A program made the translations under genes and the position numbers. The notes beneath the pieces are model-generated. The model was not told where the DNA came from. It made no database searches and saw only the letters and a list, made by a program, of their open reading frames with translations. From sequence record MG655267.1: a stretch of DNA of 64,000 nt, one strand, 5' to 3'. The number at the start of each line of letters is the position of its first letter. Position 1 is the first letter of the stretch. This document shows, in pieces, positions 3,001-46,510 of the stretch.

Positions 3001-5137
3001 CGCGTTCATTGGAATCTTCCCCTTCACGATCAGGACGATAGTTCGGGTTAGCAATGAACTTCTGCATCATCTCCCAGTACATCTCGTGGTTAAAGACATC
3101 CTGGCCATTAACCCGTTTGATGACGCCCATGTCTTTGAGCTGTGCCCGACTACCACTGTTGGCCATGGTATTCAGTGACTGCTCGACATTCGGCATATAC
3201 TGCGACTGGGCCTGCATAACGTTAGACAGGTTGTTACGCATCTGTGCCAGTTCGGGTGCATCGCCAATCTGATAATCACCAAAGGCTTTGGCCCGACCGG
3301 TTGCTTCCCGAGTGTCGAAACGTTTGTGCAAGAACTCATTGATCTCCTGCACTGCTTCTTTATTGGCATTGCCCCAGCCACTGGACTTCAAGTAGGTGTT
3401 GACGTTGAAGCCATCACCCGCTTCAGCATCCCGGGCAAAACGCATCGCTAATGCCACACGGGCATTGGGTGAGAGCTCCTGGTCGGGGTCGAGGGTTTCC
3501 ACCATGGTATTGAAGGAACCTGCGGCCGAGGAGAACTCATTGCGATTAAAGATCGACGAACGCAGATCGACGTTCGCCCGTTTCTTGGAAGTGAAGCCAC
3601 CCTGGATGTGGTTGAAGTGCACTTCCGACACCGACCCGACATCTGCTTCCAGTTTATTGGCAATCGCCGTTTGCTGGGCCAGTTGTTTAGTCAGTAAGCC
3701 TGGAATCACTTCCACCAATGAACGCCGTGACATCTGATCCCAAACAGCCGGTTCAGTCAGGTCTTTCACGCCAGGGTTGTGCAACCGAGTACGGTTACCC
3801 ATGGAGGCCGGCAATTGAAAGAGGGCGTTATTCAGGAAGGGGTTGACGACGCGCTTTTGTAACCGCGTGTGCCATTTATTCCCCTCGGCATTCGGATCGA
3901 AGTTCTCATCAAACGACTGACGGTTACGTAACCAACCATTGATCAGACCCGGTGCCGCATTTGAGTAATAGCTTAAGTCATGACCCATGCGGTTCAGACC
4001 CGGGTTACGCGACAGTGCAGGACGGGCTAAAGAGGAAAGCATCATCGGCAACATACCGACCAGTCCTTGACCCGCCATCTGTCCGTAGTCACGGGCGCCA
4101 AGCGAACGCCCCATCATGCGGGCCTGTTGTGCACCCATCATGGCAGCACGGGCGGCAGCAATGCCGCCCGAAGCGCGGTGGTTCATATCCTGGCTACGCT
4201 GATCCACCATGTTAAAGACATTGTCAAACAGACGGTTACCAAATTGCGAGACCGTACCACCTAACCCACCCAGTGCACGTTTACGAATCAACTCACGGGC
4301 CGAGGCAGAATGACTCATCTTTTCGAAGTCAGTTAAGCCGGTATTTTTCACCAGACTTGACATGGCGTCCAGACTGCGTTTGTAGAAACGTTCTTGCATC
4401 TTGCCAATTGACAACTGCAGTTTATACGAACGGTACTGGAGCTCTAATGACTTGCGCTGGTAGTTGGCAGTGAACTGCTCATTAAAGCCAACGGTACGGG
4501 CTGTGAGGCGATGGATGCCTTGCATGAAGGCCAGACTGTCTGCAGAGACGCTCGCTTGTCTGGTGGCGACTGCGGCGGTCTGTGCCATGCTCTCTTTATG
4601 CAGGGCCACAGCCAGCTGACTCGACTGCAGCGTAGCCTGCTGCATCATGGTGACGTAGTCATCGTTCTCGTTACCGGTTGAGCCGTCGTCCAGACCGGGA
4701 TCGGCAGGTTTGGTGCTGGAGACCGAATAATCGATGTCTTTATTCTCAGCCCAGACTTCAATTTGCTTTAAGACCTTCTCCGGCAATTTCCCACCGTACA
4801 TCGATAATGCATCGAGGGTTAGGTCTTTGATGTCATTGACAGAGTTACGGGTATTACTTTTAACTTTATCGTATAGGTCATCTTTGAATCTTGCTGCGCG
4901 ATCTTTTGCATCAAACGCAGGCGAAAACGATGCGGGTAACAAAGAGCGAATGATACGCTGAGGAGTGCCTTTAGTGAACACTTCCTCTTTGGCACCAGTC
5001 CAAAGGCCTGCGGCGAACTCACGAATCGCCCCGCCTTTACCCTTCTTCTTCGTACTTGCATCGTCACCGAAATCGAAGTCAAAGTCCAGGTCAAGGTCAC
5101 CCAGATCTTCGTACTCGACTTTGACATTCTCGGCCAT
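1..5137 (-). CDS. Tape-measure/large tail protein (phiKZ gp181-like), 3'-truncated by the window edge (>1700 aa)
   Basis: ATG at 5137 (MAENVKVEYEDLGDLDLDFDF...). The same frame is open wherever I translated it, down to base 2. It contains Gly/Ala-rich TMP-type repeats (GIGGILGGAAMGAAIGSVVPVVGTAIGAIAGG), an acidic/Arg-rich patch and a duplicated 'LR..YG...WF..RF.P.YL' unit. It lies divergent from the vRNAP genes, as in phiKZ-like phages. It is absent from the ORF track, probably because it has no stop codon in the window. Confidence 0.85.
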   Translation of the reverse strand, partial: MAENVKVEYEDLGDLDLDFDFDFGDDASTKKKGKGGAIREFAAGLWTGAKEEVFTKGTPQRIIRSLLPASFSPAFDAKDRAARFKDDLYDKVKSNTRNSVNDIKDLTLDALSMYGGKLPEKVLKQIEVWAENKDIDYSVSSTKPADPGLDDGSTGNENDDYVTMMQQATLQSSQLAVALHKESMAQTAAVATRQASVSADSLAFMQGIHRLTARTVGFNEQFTANYQRKSLELQYRSYKLQLSIGKMQERFYKRSLDAMSSLVKNTGLTDFEKMSHSASARELIRKRALGGLGGTVSQFGNRLFDNVFNMVDQRSQDMNHRASGGIAAARAAMMGAQQARMMGRSLGARDYGQMAGQGLVGMLPMMLSSLARPALSRNPGLNRMGHDLSYYSNAAPGLINGWLRNRQSFDENFDPNAEGNKWHTRLQKRVVNPFLNNALFQLPASMGNRTRLHNPGVKDLTEPAVWDQMSRRSLVEVIPGLLTKQLAQQTAIANKLEADVGSVSEVHFNHIQGGFTSKKRANVDLRSSIFNRNEFSSAAGSFNTMVETLDPDQELSPNARVALAMRFARDAEAGDGFNVNTYLKSSGWGNANKEAVQEINEFLHKRFDTREATGRAKAFGDYQIGDAPELAQMRNNLSNVMQAQSQYMPNVEQSLNTMANSGSRAQLKDMGVIKRVNGQDVFNHEMYWEMMQKFIANPNYRPDREGEDSNERGSNVNPGAELGEMGRETLDNLRRGVTDSLGNLRGRLTREQEEEIRAQLSQARANSPEYYQVVLQQLRARYGEVAVNRIARRLDNSLGQSLRDRVNGFGGAGAAGAAGGSGGLGDSLRNMGESASNLFGKINSVRPDTSAVKQALLNAASSGKEALRNATTELQRRFGRQAVEEAASEIAQEAEVVRSSGVFNDGTADRASRTRLPSEGITAPDAGSASETAAIVQAQLDNNALLRETIGVLASVRDSVTATKDATIAQVTGDPDIMKDSVNERQGWLRKLSGRMSNQGKSSGLIRKVFKSLPNINSPVLTVAKWTTVMPAVLGFKATRGLWRMLRDKKREDASDPDHDGVRNNSVADLIRRRAQQKKEREEAQHAHDSDDHAKDKEKPTTLFGLVAGLFSSVTGLVSGIKEFGILGGLAKFLGLGWIGDIVKGIGSVISGGKGVMDELSDALGDDEGGEEEGGRRRRRRRGGRRNRGGGGPRPRGGLISRLAGKAARGVRGLGRGIVGRTGGMLGRGVAGNLKLLVKGGGIVTAGVSALEAWDSYKAGDNAGVAEAAGSGIGGILGGAAMGAAIGSVVPVVGTAIGAIAGGAIGALGGGAIGRSLYTWFNDPGLLQQMRLRQYGVPDNDSSHVSAILKLEAALEPYVKTTDDGYASLDPKAPIAQLGSLFVDDPNDREQVEQFAGWFLHRFKPVYLTHKAVAKQVLPSQAFMDLDKSTDEAAKYEIAKRAQQFDESSDHPYMFTGRIFPDLNATDRKQTEALVKDVLDRLRNKAQKMTTGKSASVFATGMDKVASSRELSSDMVKAINPNGDIPELKTVGHKESSWFTGDRTVVSAGDLLGGLLPKAGQPMDDLTALRMKVYGLPTLDVDRVSTLLQLELVMANKIKFADNGATFDGKASDIYRVVAASFGLSPSNQWSYKSWEPWFTRRFLPAYLAFASTVYTQTGDSRPTLAVPKMPPELKFAAATAMTNAKYSDGVNAISVWTIKTSPWSTGELNDD

Positions 5138-42468: not shown

Positions 42469-42636
42469 ATGGACAAGCAGAGAGAAGATTCTATCGTTGA
42501 GATGATGACACTCGCTCAGCGATTAAATAACTTAGTCGTTGGAATGCAAGTCCGCAAAGCCCAGTTAACGTCAGGTTCCGCCAAAGTCGTCGCTGATGCA
42601 ATCAGCAAAGCGAATGTGAAACCTGAGGATCACTGA
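42469..42636 (+). CDS. Small hypothetical protein (55 aa, MDKQREDSIVEMMTLAQRL...), not in the ORF track
   Basis: AAGGA RBS at 42458-62; reads as an amphipathic helix. Confidence 0.6.
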   Translation: MDKQREDSIVEMMTLAQRLNNLVVGMQVRKAQLTSGSAKVVADAISKANVKPEDH

Positions 42637-42796
42637 GGTAGCCGTAAACGTAGTGGGTATGGCGGGGATCAATGATAGCCCTGCTCGGTGAGTTTGTTAA
42701 TCCCCGCCGTATCGCTTCGTAGAACACAGGGTCACTCATGACGTGGGGAGTGGCATAAACACCTGGGGTAGAAGTCCCAACTGCATCCAAAATTCT

Positions 42797-42872
42797 TGGT
42801 CTATAGTTCAGTCGGTAGAACAGCGGACTGTTAATCCGTAGGTCGCTGGTTCGAATCCAGCTAGACCAGCCA
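42797..42872 (+). tRNA. trnN: tRNA-Asn (GTT) with encoded CCA
   Basis: Full cloverleaf: TGGTCTA/TAGACCA acceptor, GTTC/GAAC D-stem, GCGGA-CT-GTT-AA-TCCGT anticodon arm, GCTGG-TTCGAAT-CCAGC T-arm, then G-CCA; 76 nt. Confidence 0.97.
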
Positions 42873-43104
42873 AACAATGACACCCGTCACAGCCGCTTAA
42901 GCGCGCAGAAGATGACTTGTGTGCTCTGTGGCGATACTCGGACTTGCCAGCCTGTGGGGGCGGAGTAAAGTCTGGGTGTTAGCCCGCTGCCATGTTACCA
43001 CGTGAAAGTCGTGGGGGCGTCACCCTATTAGATCGATCGCTGACAGTACGTGTTTATACTTACTTGCTTCTCTGGTTACGCTAACCTATCGTGAGGAGAT
43101 AAAC

Positions 43105-43401
43105 ATGAATCTGTATATAGTCAAACGTGATGATAGAGCTGTGGATTTCGAACAGTGTGCGGGGATGGTGGTTGCTGCGTCGTCTGAGGATGAAGCTTTG
43201 CGATTGCACCCGATGGTTCTTGACTCTAGCCACCCAGACAATGCTGAGCGGCACCTGGCTGAATCGGCGGAGAACTTCGAGGATGGTACGTTGTACGGCT
43301 GGCCTAGCCAGGACCGTTTTCACGAACTGACCATAACCTTGATAGGAACCACACACCTGACTATTCCGCAAGTTCTGTTACTCGACTATAAAGGCGGTTG
43401 A
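43105..43401 (+). CDS. Hypothetical phage protein (98 aa)
   Basis: GAGGAG RBS; the 'MVVAASSEDEALRLHP' motif is one I recall from small phage proteins. Confidence 0.8.
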   Translation: MNLYIVKRDDRAVDFEQCAGMVVAASSEDEALRLHPMVLDSSHPDNAERHLAESAENFEDGTLYGWPSQDRFHELTITLIGTTHLTIPQVLLLDYKGG

Positions 43402-43520
43402 TCTAAGTCCGGGGTAACACCCGGACACCCTATTCTGTTTTTCAGTACATCACTGGAAGATACTATCGAGAGCAGCCACTCCGATACTCTAACTTATAAA
43501 GTTTAAAAAGGATAATAACG

Positions 43521-44174
43521 ATGTCAACCGAAATGACCATTTCTCGTGCACTGGCTACAGTGAAGTCTTTGAATGTCCGCATCAAAGATATCTCTAAAAA
43601 GCAGGTGCTGATTCTGCCAACCGCCGGTACTGGCGACATGCAATCGGTGATCAACAACAGCATCACTGTTACCGATGCTGAAGCCGCCATCCAGAATAAC
43701 TGGAATGCGCTGAACGACATGATCAAAGTGCGTAACGATATTCGTGCGAAGATCATCCTGTCGAACGCCACAACCAAAGTGACCATCGCCGGTAAAGAAT
43801 ACACCATTGTTGAGGCATTGGACTTCCGCAACTCCCTGGTCGAAAAGAAAGACACGGTTGAGTGCCTGAAGCGCAACTACGACTCCACAATGAAAGTTCA
43901 CCGCCAGCAGGGCGACATCTACGAAAAGCGTTTAAGCGATGTGCGCTCCGAAGCCCTGGCCTCCGGCAAGAAGTTTGATGAAGCCAGCTTGAAGACCTTC
44001 ACCGATCCAATCGATGTGAAGATGAAACCAGGCCTGATCGATCCTCTGGGTATCTCAGCAGTTATTGAGAAGCTGGACAAAGAGATCGCTGACTTCGAAC
44101 TTAACGCCGACTACGCGTTGTCCGAATCTAACGCAACGACCAAGATCACTGTTGAACTTGGTAACATTGCTTAA
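43521..44174 (+). CDS. Long helical/coiled-coil protein (217 aa), putative partner of the downstream ncRNA
   Basis: AAGGA RBS; heptad-rich; terminal motifs MTISRALATVKSLNVRI and IDPL...LSESNATTKITVE. Confidence 0.85.
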   Translation: MSTEMTISRALATVKSLNVRIKDISKKQVLILPTAGTGDMQSVINNSITVTDAEAAIQNNWNALNDMIKVRNDIRAKIILSNATTKVTIAGKEYTIVEALDFRNSLVEKKDTVECLKRNYDSTMKVHRQQGDIYEKRLSDVRSEALASGKKFDEASLKTFTDPIDVKMKPGLIDPLGISAVIEKLDKEIADFELNADYALSESNATTKITVELGNIA

Positions 44175-44270
44175 CCCGTATTAAAAGGCTTGTCTTCGTT
44201 TGACGAAAGATCAAACACCGCCTTCCTATTTGGCCGGATGGAAGTAAAATAACCGGCCAGCCATTATACA

Positions 44271-44336
44271 TCTGTAGGTCGCAGGTTCGATTCCTGTCGG
44301 GGTGAAACCCGTAGCTCAGTCGGTTAGAGCAGCAGA
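44271..44336 (+). ncRNA. Circularly permuted tRNA-like domain (T-arm, closed acceptor, D-arm)
   Basis: TCTGT-AGGTC-GCAGG-TTCGATT-CCTGT-CGGG-GTGAAA-CCCG-TA-GCTC-AGTCGGTTA-GAGC-A-GCAGA. Confidence 0.85.
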
Positions 44337-44409
44337 ACAACTGCTTATGCTAAAAGCAATGATCTTTGGGATCATCAATGGTGTACTGTGAGCACCTTGA
44401 AATCACAGG

Positions 44410-44533
44410 TCTAAAGCTTAAAGCTATAACGTATAATGACTAAAGCTCTAAAGGTTTAAACTTATAACGTTAAAAAGATCTACACTCCCTGATGACTGTG
44501 TTCGTCGGGCTATAACGCTAAAACCTTTTAAAC
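44410..44533 (+). repeat. Imperfect 7-9-nt tandem units (N-N-TAAAG / N-TATAAC)
   Basis: TCTAAAG CTTAAAG CTATAAC GTATAAT GACTAAAG CTCTAAAG GTTTAAA CTTATAAC GTTAAAAAG (44410-77), then CTATAAC GCTAAAAC CTTTTAAAC (44510-33). Confidence 0.75.
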
Positions 44534-44648
44534 AAATCCTGGGTATTCCTCCGCTGTGAGGATGGGTAATGTGGAGTGTGGTCTGCCACGTATCGCCGCC
44601 AGGCTGTCTTGCGGAGACAAGTCTTTCCCTTTTGCAATAGGTGACCTA

Positions 44649-44819
44649 ATGACAGGCACTGCATTAATGATCATTGAGCAACCACAACCGGAATTCAATA
44701 TCCCGTTGAGGTCGCCTTATCCTACCCTTCATGACGTAAGGTTTTCTATGTTCCCTGTTATGGGTGAACCTGAGAACGAAGGGTTTGAACAAGATTCAGA
44801 AACTGACGCATTACATTGA
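44649..44819 (+). CDS. Small acidic hypothetical protein (56 aa)
   Basis: AGGTGA RBS before the ATG at 44649; the ORF-track start (44556) lies inside the structured RNA. Confidence 0.5.
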   Translation: MTGTALMIIEQPQPEFNIPLRSPYPTLHDVRFSMFPVMGEPENEGFEQDSETDALH

Positions 44820-44860
44820 GGAGATTCAATCGCGCAGGTTCTTAACCGACTAACGCCAGG

Positions 44861-45088
44861 GTGACTTGTGTTATCTTGGTAAAAGGTGAACGCGTCGTTA
44901 CAGCGCATACGACTGAATGGGCCGATCCCCCCTTCGGAGTAATATTAGCCCAGATCCATTGCACACCGATAAGTCAATGGCTAGCCAGACACACAAAAAA
45001 CTATTATGCTTCGACAGATGGTAGGTGCCTGATTACTACAATTCGATTCGATACCTCAACTAAAAGGCGGACACAAGGGCCGTTATGA
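44861..45088 (+). CDS. Possible small protein (75 aa)
   Basis: GTG-start ORF with a weak RBS. Confidence 0.35.
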   Translation: MTCVILVKGERVVTAHTTEWADPPFGVILAQIHCTPISQWLARHTKNYYASTDGRCLITTIRFDTSTKRRTQGPL

Positions 45089-45108
45089 GTGAAGCACCAG
45101 GAAACTAT

Positions 45109-45160
45109 ACCTTGGTAAGGCCCCAGGCTTTTTATCCTTACCAAGGTTCTCTTTCTTTTA
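45109..45160 (+). terminator. Intrinsic terminator-like hairpin
   Basis: ACCTTGGTAAGG/CCTTACCAAGGT 12-bp perfect stem followed by a T-rich tract. Confidence 0.6.
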
Positions 45161-45267
45161 CTACCTGATAATGGGTGGATGCCTTAGTCACCTTTCTTTC
45201 ACAGAGGCAACAACCTAAGGCGTCTGCCCGCCCTATAACCCGAGTCGTCTAGCGACAAGACACCGTC

Positions 45268-45348
45268 AGACCCATTTGGTAACAGCCTAACTTACCTGTT
45301 ACCCAACCTATGACGGAAACAGGTGGTTCAACTCCACCTCTTGGGTCT
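45268..45348 (+). ncRNA. tRNA-like fold with a T-loop arm and no canonical anticodon arm
   Basis: AGACCCA/TGGGTCT closing stem, GGTAACAG/CTGTTACC hairpin and AGGTGG-TTCAACT-CCACCT T-arm. Confidence 0.5.
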
Positions 45349-45431
45349 TAGGTATTGGCTTAGGCAAACTCCGTCGCGGCTTTACCCTCAATAGGCTGCG
45401 TTGCGTAAGTCAGTACCGTGCTGTGCGTCGT

Positions 45432-45580
45432 ACTCCCTGATGAGGCGCCCGACGTTAAAAGGCACGAAACGGGGACAGAGGATACTCCATCGGTGATTGC
45501 AATCAACCACGCTGGGGTTTATACAGGCACTTGAGAGACACGCTGGTTTCTCGTTGCCTGTCCCTTTGTCCCGTCGGAGT
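45432..45580 (+). ncRNA. Hammerhead ribozyme (type I topology) with a large stem-III insertion
   Basis: Stem I ACTCC/GGAGT; core CTGATGA (45437-43); imperfect stem II; GAAA (45466-69); stem III ACGGG(G)ACA/TGTCCCGT; GTC cleavage triplet at 45573-75. Confidence 0.75.
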
Positions 45581-45984
45581 CCCTTGCGTTCCTGGAGGGA
45601 TGACACCGCGTTAAGACTGATCCCCTTAACGAAGTTGCAATAGCCGGGGGTGATTCTTGCAAAGGTTACTCACAGCAGACTGCCTCCGCCAATTGCGGAT
45701 GGCTTAGGCCCTCAGTCCGTCAGGAAGTTGTCGTTGAATAAGTGACAGCTGGACTAGGGTTGCATTATAACCCGGCAAGTGTGCAGCCTGTTTTTTCTTC
45801 ATGTGTACCTGAACCGGTTCAGGAGCCTACAGATGAGGGAACGACGGGAAGCATATTGCTACCGATCATTTGCTGTGTGACCGGGCCAAGGATGGCATAT
45901 ACCGGAACCAGTAACCGTATTCAGCGCAGGTGCGCTTTCTCTTCCTTATCTTGTGGTTAAACCGCGCCTGTCTGGATCATATGT

Positions 45985-46012
45985 GCCGGGGTCACACCTG
46001 GCGCTTATGCCG
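45985..46012 (+). terminator. Hairpin plus TTATGCCG closing the RNA island
   Basis: GCCGGG-GTCACA-CCTGGC, then TTATGC at 46005-46010. Confidence 0.6.
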
Positions 46013-46037
46013 TCTGAGTTGTATCCTTTTTTACTCC

Positions 46038-46045
46038 TACATTAC
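46038..46045 (+). promoter_or_regulatory. Early promoter-like box TACATTAC
   Basis: One mismatch to the consensus, about 28 nt after TTATGC. Confidence 0.55.
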
Positions 46046-46087
46046 GAAGCTGATATACCCATCAATTCAATTTAAAGGAGTTTAGTT

Positions 46088-46510
46088 ATGAAGAACGTTA
46101 CTATTGCTATTGGTCGTAATCCGCTGTCCAACCAGAAATGGATTCTGGATCAGATCGTGAGTCTGGTGAAGTCCGGTAAGTCCGACATCTTCATCGTCAA
46201 TACCGACTCACGGGTTTCCACTGCGGTACTCAATGCCTTGAAAGAGTATACGAAGGATGATGCGGAATACACTCGCTTGGTTGCTGAGAACGGTGTCATG
46301 TTCCACACAACCGAGACCGAAGACCTGCAAACGCTGGATGATGCTAAGATGAACAGCCGGTCGGCGATTCTGGCCAACATGCTGTTCAGCCTGCCATTGG
46401 TCAAACAGTGTCGTGATCTGGCGCGTCATCACGTCCCGGTCTTTGTGAGTGCCACACCTGCCATGTCTGGTAAGGTGCCGGCTTCCGCCCATACCAAGTT
46501 CCTCGATTAA
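46088..46510 (+). CDS. Hypothetical protein (140 aa)
   Basis: AAGGAG RBS. Confidence 0.8.
   Translation: MKNVTIAIGRNPLSNQKWILDQIVSLVKSGKSDIFIVNTDSRVSTAVLNALKEYTKDDAEYTRLVAENGVMFHTTETEDLQTLDDAKMNSRSAILANMLFSLPLVKQCRDLARHHVPVFVSATPAMSGKVPASAHTKFLD

Follow-up and report, generated by a model that had tools for sequence, protein, structure and literature searches.

In the phage sequence record MG655267.1, between positions 44410 and 44533, a short A-rich unit recurs every 7-8 nucleotides (nt), and the locus raises the question of whether such a tract is chance low-complexity sequence, a signal in the DNA or a working part of an RNA and, if the last, what might read it. Our analysis identifies it as the repeat module of a phage non-coding RNA (ncRNA) that stands alone, is ~435 nt long and extends over ~44187-44623. 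We hold with high confidence that the array is a selected periodic module of a genuine ncRNA family, in which the cores of the units are conserved while the bases that space them drift. Position numbers refer to the window, that is, the whole 64-kb stretch of MG655267.1 that was analysed (64,000 nt), and genome-wide counts to G001, the nearest complete record (271,182 bp, 98% complete). The 501 bases around the tract display 99.8-100% identity to 16 records of Erwinia amylovora jumbo phages of the genus Agricanvirus (Ea35-70, RAY, Simmy50 and others) and 88% identity to Erwinia phage AH06. Ea35-70 has no annotation at the tract, which falls between Ea357_199, a 'tail fiber protein' (43521-44174 in the window), and a small hypothetical open reading frame (ORF). 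Convincing ORFs are scarce in the 3.5 kb around the tract, and a transfer RNA (tRNA) gene, tRNA-Asn, is found at 42797-42872.

Periodicity of the repeat array

The array consists of two parts separated by a hairpin:

44410-44477, plus strand: first part of the repeat array, nine units of 7-8 nt with the core UAA(A/C)(G) (sequence, run counts, shuffles and autocorrelation)
44487-44509, plus strand: array-splitting hairpin, CCC-GAUGA paired with UCGUC-GGG (sequence and consensus fold)
44510-44533, plus strand: second part of the repeat array, three units (sequence and relatives)

This is the arrangement that an initial annotation, made from the DNA letters, had described, and its account of nine units, a hairpin and three more units agrees with the sequence. 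The TAA cores of the first part start at 44412, 44419, 44427, 44434, 44441, 44449, 44457, 44465 and 44471, at successive spacings of 7, 8, 7, 7, 8, 8, 8 and 6 nt, and those of the second part at 44513, 44519 and 44529. At 44410-44453 Tandem Repeats Finder detects an array of period 7, with 73% matches and a score of 32, which is low because the units are degenerate. The units also abut without spacers, so that the tract is, as had been noted, unlike a CRISPR array or a satellite, with their near-identical repeats and unique spacers.

The regularity of the tract is exceptional for its genome. A run of nine TAA triplets at 6-9 nt spacing occurs once on the two strands of G001, where the next longest TAA run has five; among all 64 trinucleotides no run is longer, and those other than TAA reach at most seven. 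Of 20,000 dinucleotide-preserving shuffles of the tract none reached nine, the maximum being eight, in three shuffles. The word YTATAACG has three copies in the window, all of them within the tract, and thus the unit is not a genome-wide promoter or ribosome-site word. A complementary, U-rich partner array was found nowhere in the G001 genome.

Comparison with relatives reveals which positions are held. In AH06 all 12 TAA cores are kept, and there are ~20 changes at non-core positions of the tract. Four intermediate relatives (L202-L205; 47-59% protein identity, on Logan contigs of 9 kb to 288 kb) share the architecture of the window: nine TAA units, a hairpin and then two or three units more. 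Their TAA core columns are mostly invariant, the most distant relative, L205, being short of one or two units, and the mid-array hairpin occupies the same position with an unrelated sequence. Across 23 diverse members of the family (GC content 27-54%), base autocorrelation in the 120 nt before the junction motif that follows the array exceeds that of dinucleotide shuffles at lag 7 or 8 in every member, and in most of them one of these lags has the largest excess. Mean z-scores over the 23 are 3.4 at lag 7, 2.0 at lag 8 and 2.4 at lag 14, and lag 8 is the strongest in the window clade. Core-to-core spacings outside the window clade are 7 (n=85), 8 (n=14) and 14 (n=29), with harmonics at 14, 21 and 28, and within it they are 8 (n=26) and 7 (n=10). 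The family consensus unit can be written (U/C)-A-A-A-G-N-U or N-A-A-A-G-Y-U, with a period of 7, and that of the window clade U-A-A-(A/C)-G-Y-U, occasionally one base longer, with a period of 7-8. The periodicity read from a single sequence is therefore retained in relatives, both near and distant, and goes beyond what shuffled sequence of the same composition provides.

The enclosing RNA and its family

The tract had been assigned to a candidate ncRNA, and this is borne out by a covarying closing stem, a covarying junction helix and metatranscriptome contigs. The parts of the RNA outside the array, all on the plus strand, are as follows:

44187-44204: 5' strand of the closing stem P1, followed at 44205 by GAAAG, where the junction motif of the family is GAAAAC (fold and covariation)
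44228-44258: hairpin of the 5' domain, stem UGGCCGG/CCGGCCA (consensus fold of the window and AH06)
44271-44336: circularly permuted tRNA mimic (T arm, closed acceptor hairpin, D arm) at the variable insertion site (partial match to Rfam YrlA)
44386-44408: hairpin directly before the array, CUGUGA/UCACAG (read from the sequence)
44526-44542: junction motif (UUUAYAAAAUCC in the family, here UUUUAAACAAAUCC) and CCUGG, the 5' strand of the 3'-domain helix (alignment)
44543-44598: 3' domain within the covarying helix (near-identical in the window and AH06)
44599-44606: 3' strand of the helix, CCAGG, overlapping the invariant GGCUG at 44602-44606 (covariation)
44606-44623: 3' strand of P1, followed by a U-rich tail to ~44636 (fold and covariation)

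In P1, 44187-44204 pairs with 44606-44623 through 12 of the 14 core-register pairs and four outer pairs, and when 44176-44640 is folded its 5' end pairs with its 3' end, with a z-score of -3.7 and no shuffle as good. The junction helix pairs CCUGG at 44538-44542 with CCAGG at 44599-44603, at a distance of 68 nt compared with 52-57 nt in most members, and the AAA-CC of the junction motif is invariant in 22 aligned distant members. G-U pairs fix the RNA strand. As the tract is closed by a covarying stem, lies beside a covarying helix and has its strand fixed by G-U pairs, it acts as RNA and not as DNA. Between the window and AH06 conservation is higher over the non-coding stretch than at the end of the neighbouring gene, and it ceases at ~44636. 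Inside the closing stem the hairpin at 44228-44258 has a larger loop and occupies the site of an anticodon-arm-like hairpin in other members. The acceptor hairpin of the tRNA mimic displays compensatory changes relative to AH06, and L202-L204 have a hairpin of other sequence at the site of the one that precedes the array. A coding or transfer-messenger RNA (tmRNA)-tag reading was rejected, as UAA is found in all three frames of the array and ARAGORN returned no tmRNA.

Leaf-litter metatranscriptome contigs from three studies cover 44209-44359, 44370-44519, 44389-44614 and 44383-44615; otherwise such contigs within 42500-46500 are tRNA cross-matches and one 181-nt piece. In two metatranscriptome runs the contig ends are near-identical, which is suggestive. 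The contigs also carry T>C differences from the window at 44486 (three runs) and 44577 (one run), and thus a close variant of the window phage lives in leaf litter.

The RNA belongs to a family whose members are 300-445 nt long. From the 5' end they comprise the closing stem, GAAAAC, the 5' domain, a variable insert, CUGUAAAG, about six heptads of the form NAAAGYU, a small hairpin, a further three to four heptads, UUUAYAAAAUCC, the covarying helix with the 3' domain, GGCUG and the closing stem. The first distant homologue was obtained by luck, at the locus L106, from a TAA-period pattern scan that was unspecific and returned AT-rich giant viruses. This locus contains, in order, a homologue of the gene upstream of the array (the P0001 family, considered below), a tRNA-like element, ~100 nt of UUAAAG-type units at 7-8 nt and a 3' segment like that of the window. 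A 17-mer scan of IMG/VR gave chance matches and phage RAY and nothing more, and a metagenome scan with the single P0001 protein gave no new members.

A search that started from the gene, using an alignment of the P0001 protein and three distant homologues, led to 52 IMG/VR loci. With strict anchors, at least 45 of these contain AAA(U/C)CC followed, 52-57 nt on (62-71 nt in a few), by (A/U)GGCUG; the anchors sit 175-611 nt after the gene, and five more loci have variant anchors, judged by eye. CC is followed by three bases that pair with the three preceding GG, and this helix covaries abundantly, its middle pair being AU in 8 cases, GC in 4, UA in 4 and CG in 3. The closing stem is formed by the 14 nt that come after GGCUG and a partner strand lying 150-380 nt upstream, which precedes GAAAAC. 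In 79 members the closing stem has 31 distinct sequences; at 13 of its 14 positions at least 29 of the 31 are paired, with 4-6 pair types per position. A covariance model built from distant members only has a sole match in the window, at 44518-44633, which is modest in score (20.3 bits, E 0.59) but full-length and exactly in place. The window contains each of the features that mark the family, namely the closing stem with GAAA(A/G), the AAAUCC...GGCUG helix, a hairpin-split array 5' of the junction and a P0001-family gene upstream on the same strand.

A search that started from the RNA, in which IMG/VR was scanned with its 3' motif alone, returned 117 loci, and these split cleanly. The 29 true members have at least five cores, all five pairs of the helix and 13-14 of the 14 pairs of the closing stem, and the chance matches lack a closing stem, pair poorly in the helix and have 0-2 cores. 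The family is found in hundreds of phages, the classic phage T5 among them. Its T5-like version is present in 451 GenBank phage records, and of 25 rows inspected 22 lacked an annotation for it; in Shivani, a T5-like phage, a family RNA with an 11-unit array follows the gene. The gene and the RNA together range over T5-like, nucleus-forming jumbo, gut and environmental phages, including phages of Vibrio, Pseudomonas, Klebsiella, Bacillus and Clostridium. The literature yielded no account of this RNA or of the function of RAGATH-27, an Rfam motif that resembles its 5' domain (see below), and the ncRNAs found by Grad-seq in phage phiKZ are other RNAs. This large phage RNA family lacks annotation as a whole: Rfam has no model of the RNA, and only its 5' part had been catalogued, as RAGATH-27, without a function.

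In many members an ordinary hairpin fills the variable site; the window clade has the permuted tRNA mimic there, and L194 (3321-3391) a complete embedded tRNA (Rfam, 61 bits). In L106 and L169 the insert is a tRNA-Ser-like gene, which in L106 (2305-2379, minus strand) resembles tRNA-Ser(UGA) and has a variable arm that is short. Processing of such an embedded tRNA would leave two RNA pieces joined by the closing stem. In many members the 5'-domain hairpin has a 7-nt loop of the anticodon-loop form C/U-U-N-N-N-A-A, for example CUGAUAA or CUGCUAA, and the loop CUUUUAA of the T5-like L323 (3274-3288) is that of tRNA-Lys(UUU). The anticodon-loop-like hairpins of the 5' domain are located as follows:

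L323, 3274-3288
L164, ~3240-3256
L175, ~3237-3251
L147, ~3298-3316

The linked gene and the reading of the array

Two features upstream of the RNA bear on what might recognize its units:

43521-44174, plus strand: P0001-family gene, 217 amino acids, phrog_1491, 'tail fiber protein' in RefSeq (homologue searches)
43487-43520, plus strand: mini-array of 4-5 units over the leader and ribosome-binding site of the P0001 gene (run scan)

In all 29 true members found from the RNA, a P0001-family gene lies 300-582 nt upstream on the same strand; other genes around these loci are not conserved. The most distant homologues of the gene (L005/L199 and L198) seemingly lack the RNA. By tblastn the gene family is present in 724 phage records, several hundred of which are T5-like phages of Salmonella and Escherichia, and it occurs also in phages of Vibrio, Pseudomonas, Klebsiella, Bacillus, Cronobacter and Clostridium. 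In T5-like phages (L323, 2501-3139) the gene sits amid early genes and tRNA-related genes, the early genes being, as in Shivani, those for RNase H, an exonuclease and an HNH endonuclease. Its position among early genes makes the 'tail fiber' label implausible, and the label carried by phrog_1491 and RefSeq is probably an annotation error. In the AlphaFold model of the P0001 protein (predicted local distance difference test score 83.5) a bundle of helices is accompanied by a small sheet of four strands. No function for the protein emerged from Pfam, a PDB sequence search, Foldseek, VIA-align or the ESM Atlas.

The unit recurs before the gene itself. The TAA cores of the leader (43490, 43497, 43504, 43513 and 43516) run into the start codon; this mini-array is one of four 4-unit runs on the plus strand of the 271-kb genome and is kept in AH06 and in L202-L205. 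The leader in Shivani contains UUUAAAC, UUCAAAU and CUUAAAC. Thirty distinct P0001-family leaders have 1.23 units per leader, compared with 0.40 in 348 leaders of other ORFs from the same loci (Mann-Whitney p = 7e-11). On the minus strand of G001, at 218202-218229, five TAA units at 6-8 nt spacing stand directly before an ATG, and this leader is a possible further target of whatever reads the unit.

The strict register, the conserved cores with free spacers, the absence of a complementary strand and the site between structured domains point to multivalent recognition at the RNA level. Our preferred reading, held at about even odds, is that the array is a multivalent protein-binding platform. 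On this proposal the array would be a mostly unpaired rail on which ~10 copies of one protein sit side by side, one per 7-8 nt. The gene is linked to the RNA and carries units on its own ribosome-binding site, and its product is therefore the best candidate for the ligand, an identification that we offer tentatively. One subunit of the P0001-family product would occupy each unit; the protein would repress its own translation at a leader and ribosome-binding site that carry 2-5 units, and the 10-12 units of the RNA would titrate the protein or serve to scaffold and assemble it. A broader proposal, which we consider speculative and somewhat doubtful, is that the gene and the RNA constitute an unrecognised, widespread phage ribonucleoprotein. 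In such a particle the helical-bundle protein would polymerise along the heptads, one subunit per 7-8 nt, a scaffold made of tRNA parts would control the synthesis of the protein, and the particle would have a role in tRNA or RNA metabolism or in countering RNA-targeting host defences.

It should be emphasized that several observations weigh against this account of the array and its ligand. The initial annotation took the array to be single-stranded, and partition-function folding does not bear this out, the predicted probability of being unpaired (0.41) not differing significantly from that of the rest of the RNA (0.39). The P0001 protein has no Pfam domain, save weak DUF6847 matches in a few members, nor does its model contain a recognisable RNA-binding fold, its structure matching only uncharacterised phage proteins and generic coiled coils. 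The p value for the leaders overstates their independence, because the leaders share descent and ORF starts were crudely called, and A-rich leaders are in any case common as translational enhancers. It could also be argued that the linkage of gene and RNA has a trivial origin, as the RNA could simply be the 3' untranslated region of the gene. Finally, the metatranscriptome contigs are weak support for transcription since the runs were chosen for holding this stretch.

Other readers of the array have to be considered. The array might bind an abundant host factor that recognizes single-stranded RNA, such as S1/the 30S subunit, the KH/S1 domains of PNPase, RNase E or Hfq, as a decoy or tether, much as a Y RNA tethers Ro to PNPase and CrcZ sequesters Hfq. 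In accord with such a target, the units are similar to the A/U-rich leader sequences that precede Shine-Dalgarno sites in the window phage, the family extends across phages of many hosts, as expected for a conserved host partner, and one module of the RNA is a tRNA mimic like that of Y RNAs, even though a Ro/TROVE gene is missing from the phage. A host factor, however, leaves the strict linkage to one phage gene unexplained, and the heptads offer neither contiguous A-R-N triplets for the distal face of Hfq nor GGA motifs for CsrA; we therefore consider this reading unlikely. Rather improbable, in our view, is a purely architectural role in which the array is a flexible spacer, makes tertiary A-minor contacts or forms an RNA-RNA or self-assembly interface like those of the RNA-only cages of ROOL and GOLLD. 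The RNA is indeed large, closed and beside phage tRNA genes, as are ROOL and GOLLD. Folding predicts that ~60% of the array bases are paired, in distant members the mid-array hairpin is made by one unit pairing with the following CUUUGAA, and AGCU and AAGCUU palindromes recur where units join. Rfam, however, gave no ROOL or GOLLD match at E up to 10, and the units have no conserved partner sequence, the A-rich array lacking a U-rich strand. The one candidate for such a partner, a predicted 8-bp pairing of unit 4 (44431-44438) with 44262-44269, was rejected as the complement is lost in L202-L205.

The array could alternatively be a decoy substrate or inhibitor of an endoribonuclease that cuts A-rich or codon-like AAA/AAG/UAA sites, shielding phage mRNAs and tRNAs from toxin-antitoxin or anti-phage nucleases. 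The tRNA regions of phages are known to serve in counter-defence, the RNA is itself a patchwork of tRNA-like elements and heads tRNA islands, and UAA, together with the AAA/AAG of the units, is found in all three frames of the array. No nuclease partner was identified, however, the units in the leader of the neighbouring gene are left unexplained, and a single nuclease motif does not fit because the core differs by clade (UAA here, CAAAG elsewhere), all of which renders a nuclease decoy very improbable. Barely tenable is the view that the repeats act as DNA, as stacked -10-like boxes, iterons or a packaging/terminase site, or are chance low-complexity sequence. TATAAT and TATAAC hexamers are present in the tract, and repeat arrays flank some pac sites. 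The tract is, however, enclosed by covarying RNA helices of one strand and covered by RNA contigs, a period of 7-8 bp would set successive sites on different faces of the duplex, and the unit is absent from other intergenic regions; chance is excluded by the shuffles and by the conservation.

Few phage ncRNAs are understood; in this one the covariation is clear, and a single uncharacterised gene goes with it. The heptad array is its most distinctive feature and a direct experimental handle, T5 with Escherichia coli being a classic laboratory system. Should the array prove to be a rail for a cooperative binder, it would represent a new example of periodic protein-RNA recognition beside TRAP, CsrA/CsrB and Hfq/CrcZ, and could explain what phage tRNA-like mimics attach to. 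If instead the RNA self-assembles, it would join ROOL and GOLLD.

Likeness to known RNAs and accompanying elements

The initial annotation compared the array to the periodic (G/U)AG repeats bound by TRAP. The likeness to the trp leaders of Bacillus lies in a regular, degenerate, spacer-poor array of ~9-12 units, for which one unit per subunit is the natural reading. The analogy fails, however, in its particulars. There is no GAG/UAG series, the core being AAAG/UAA; the period is 7-8 rather than 5-6, with spacings of 6-8 over nine and three units as against ~11 repeats; and TRAP sites lie in mRNA leaders of operons and act by attenuation, whereas the heptad array lies in a stand-alone closed ncRNA and only the mini-array in a leader. 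CsrB/CsrA or CrcZ/Hfq are closer analogies. CsrB/RsmZ and CrcZ are likewise stand-alone ncRNAs of several hundred nt, with ~6-20 copies of a short motif that is found also at regulated ribosome-binding sites, and share the logic of titration and translational repression proposed here for the heptad RNA. They differ in that their motifs are GGA in hairpin loops or A-R-N tracts, whereas the heptad RNA has AAAG/UAA in a strict, contiguous 7-8-nt register, and in that its presumed ligand would be an uncharacterised phage protein. Consistent with this difference, 44410-44533 contains no GGA series, and no Csr/Rsm family of Rfam matched at E up to 10. Another phage system invites comparison. The T4 gene 32 mRNA has an autoregulatory operator in which unstructured A/U-rich repeats of the UUAAA type lie beside a pseudoknot, and gp32 has a site of ~7 nt. 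Here too A-rich phage repeats adjoin a structured element over a ribosome-binding site and would serve a cooperative binder of ~7 nt. T4, however, is not known to have a separate ncRNA copy of the array, and the P0001 protein is unrelated to gp32.

Parts of the RNA resemble catalogued families. The 5' domain of the gut-phage member L164 (the 5' strand of P1, CGAAAAC and the first hairpin) matches the whole 86-nt model of RAGATH-27 (RF03100) at 38.7 bits (E 9.5e-4), below the gathering score of 76.1. This weak match indicates that part of the RNA family has already been catalogued as a motif without a function. The RAGATH-27 model differs in having no array, junction, 3' domain or closing stem, and it has no match in the window (E up to 10) or in the T5-like phage. 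The likeness to YrlA (RF02553) consists of an RNA closed by a stem of its 5' and 3' ends, a permuted tRNA-like module and a modular scaffold logic. The match at 44273-44336 covers model positions 23-87 and at 44.5 bits falls short of the gathering score of 69, and the model also gives sub-threshold matches in 13 of 14 control genomes. Bacterial Y RNAs contain, near the 5' end, the Rsr/Ro-binding motif GNCGAAN0-1G (PMC4201824). In the window GACGAAAG at 44202-44209 fits this motif, whereas the homologous site elsewhere in the family is CCGAAAAC or UUGAAAAU, which do not, and the fit may be coincidental. A six-frame search of G001 gave no match to TROVE/Rsr (PF05731) at E up to 1. In contrast to Y RNAs, which have no repeat array, the heptad RNA carries the tRNA mimic as one filler of a variable site. 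A Ro/Y-RNA frame for the whole RNA was therefore rejected, G001 having no TROVE gene and the fit to the Rsr motif not being conserved in the family.

ROOL and GOLLD are, like the heptad RNA, large structured RNAs of phages or prophages beside tRNA genes. The two have no match to it in sequence or structure in Rfam (E up to 10), and to our knowledge neither has a heptad array or an obligate partner gene.

The family RNA heads tRNA islands, and in the gut-phage relatives the loci are dense islands of ncRNAs and tRNAs. In these relatives RAGATH-36 RNAs (120-133 bits) are found ~1.5 kb upstream of the gene (L175, 903-1059; L164, 937-1065; L162, 1664-1806), and L171 carries a tmRNA gene at 445-854 (115 bits).

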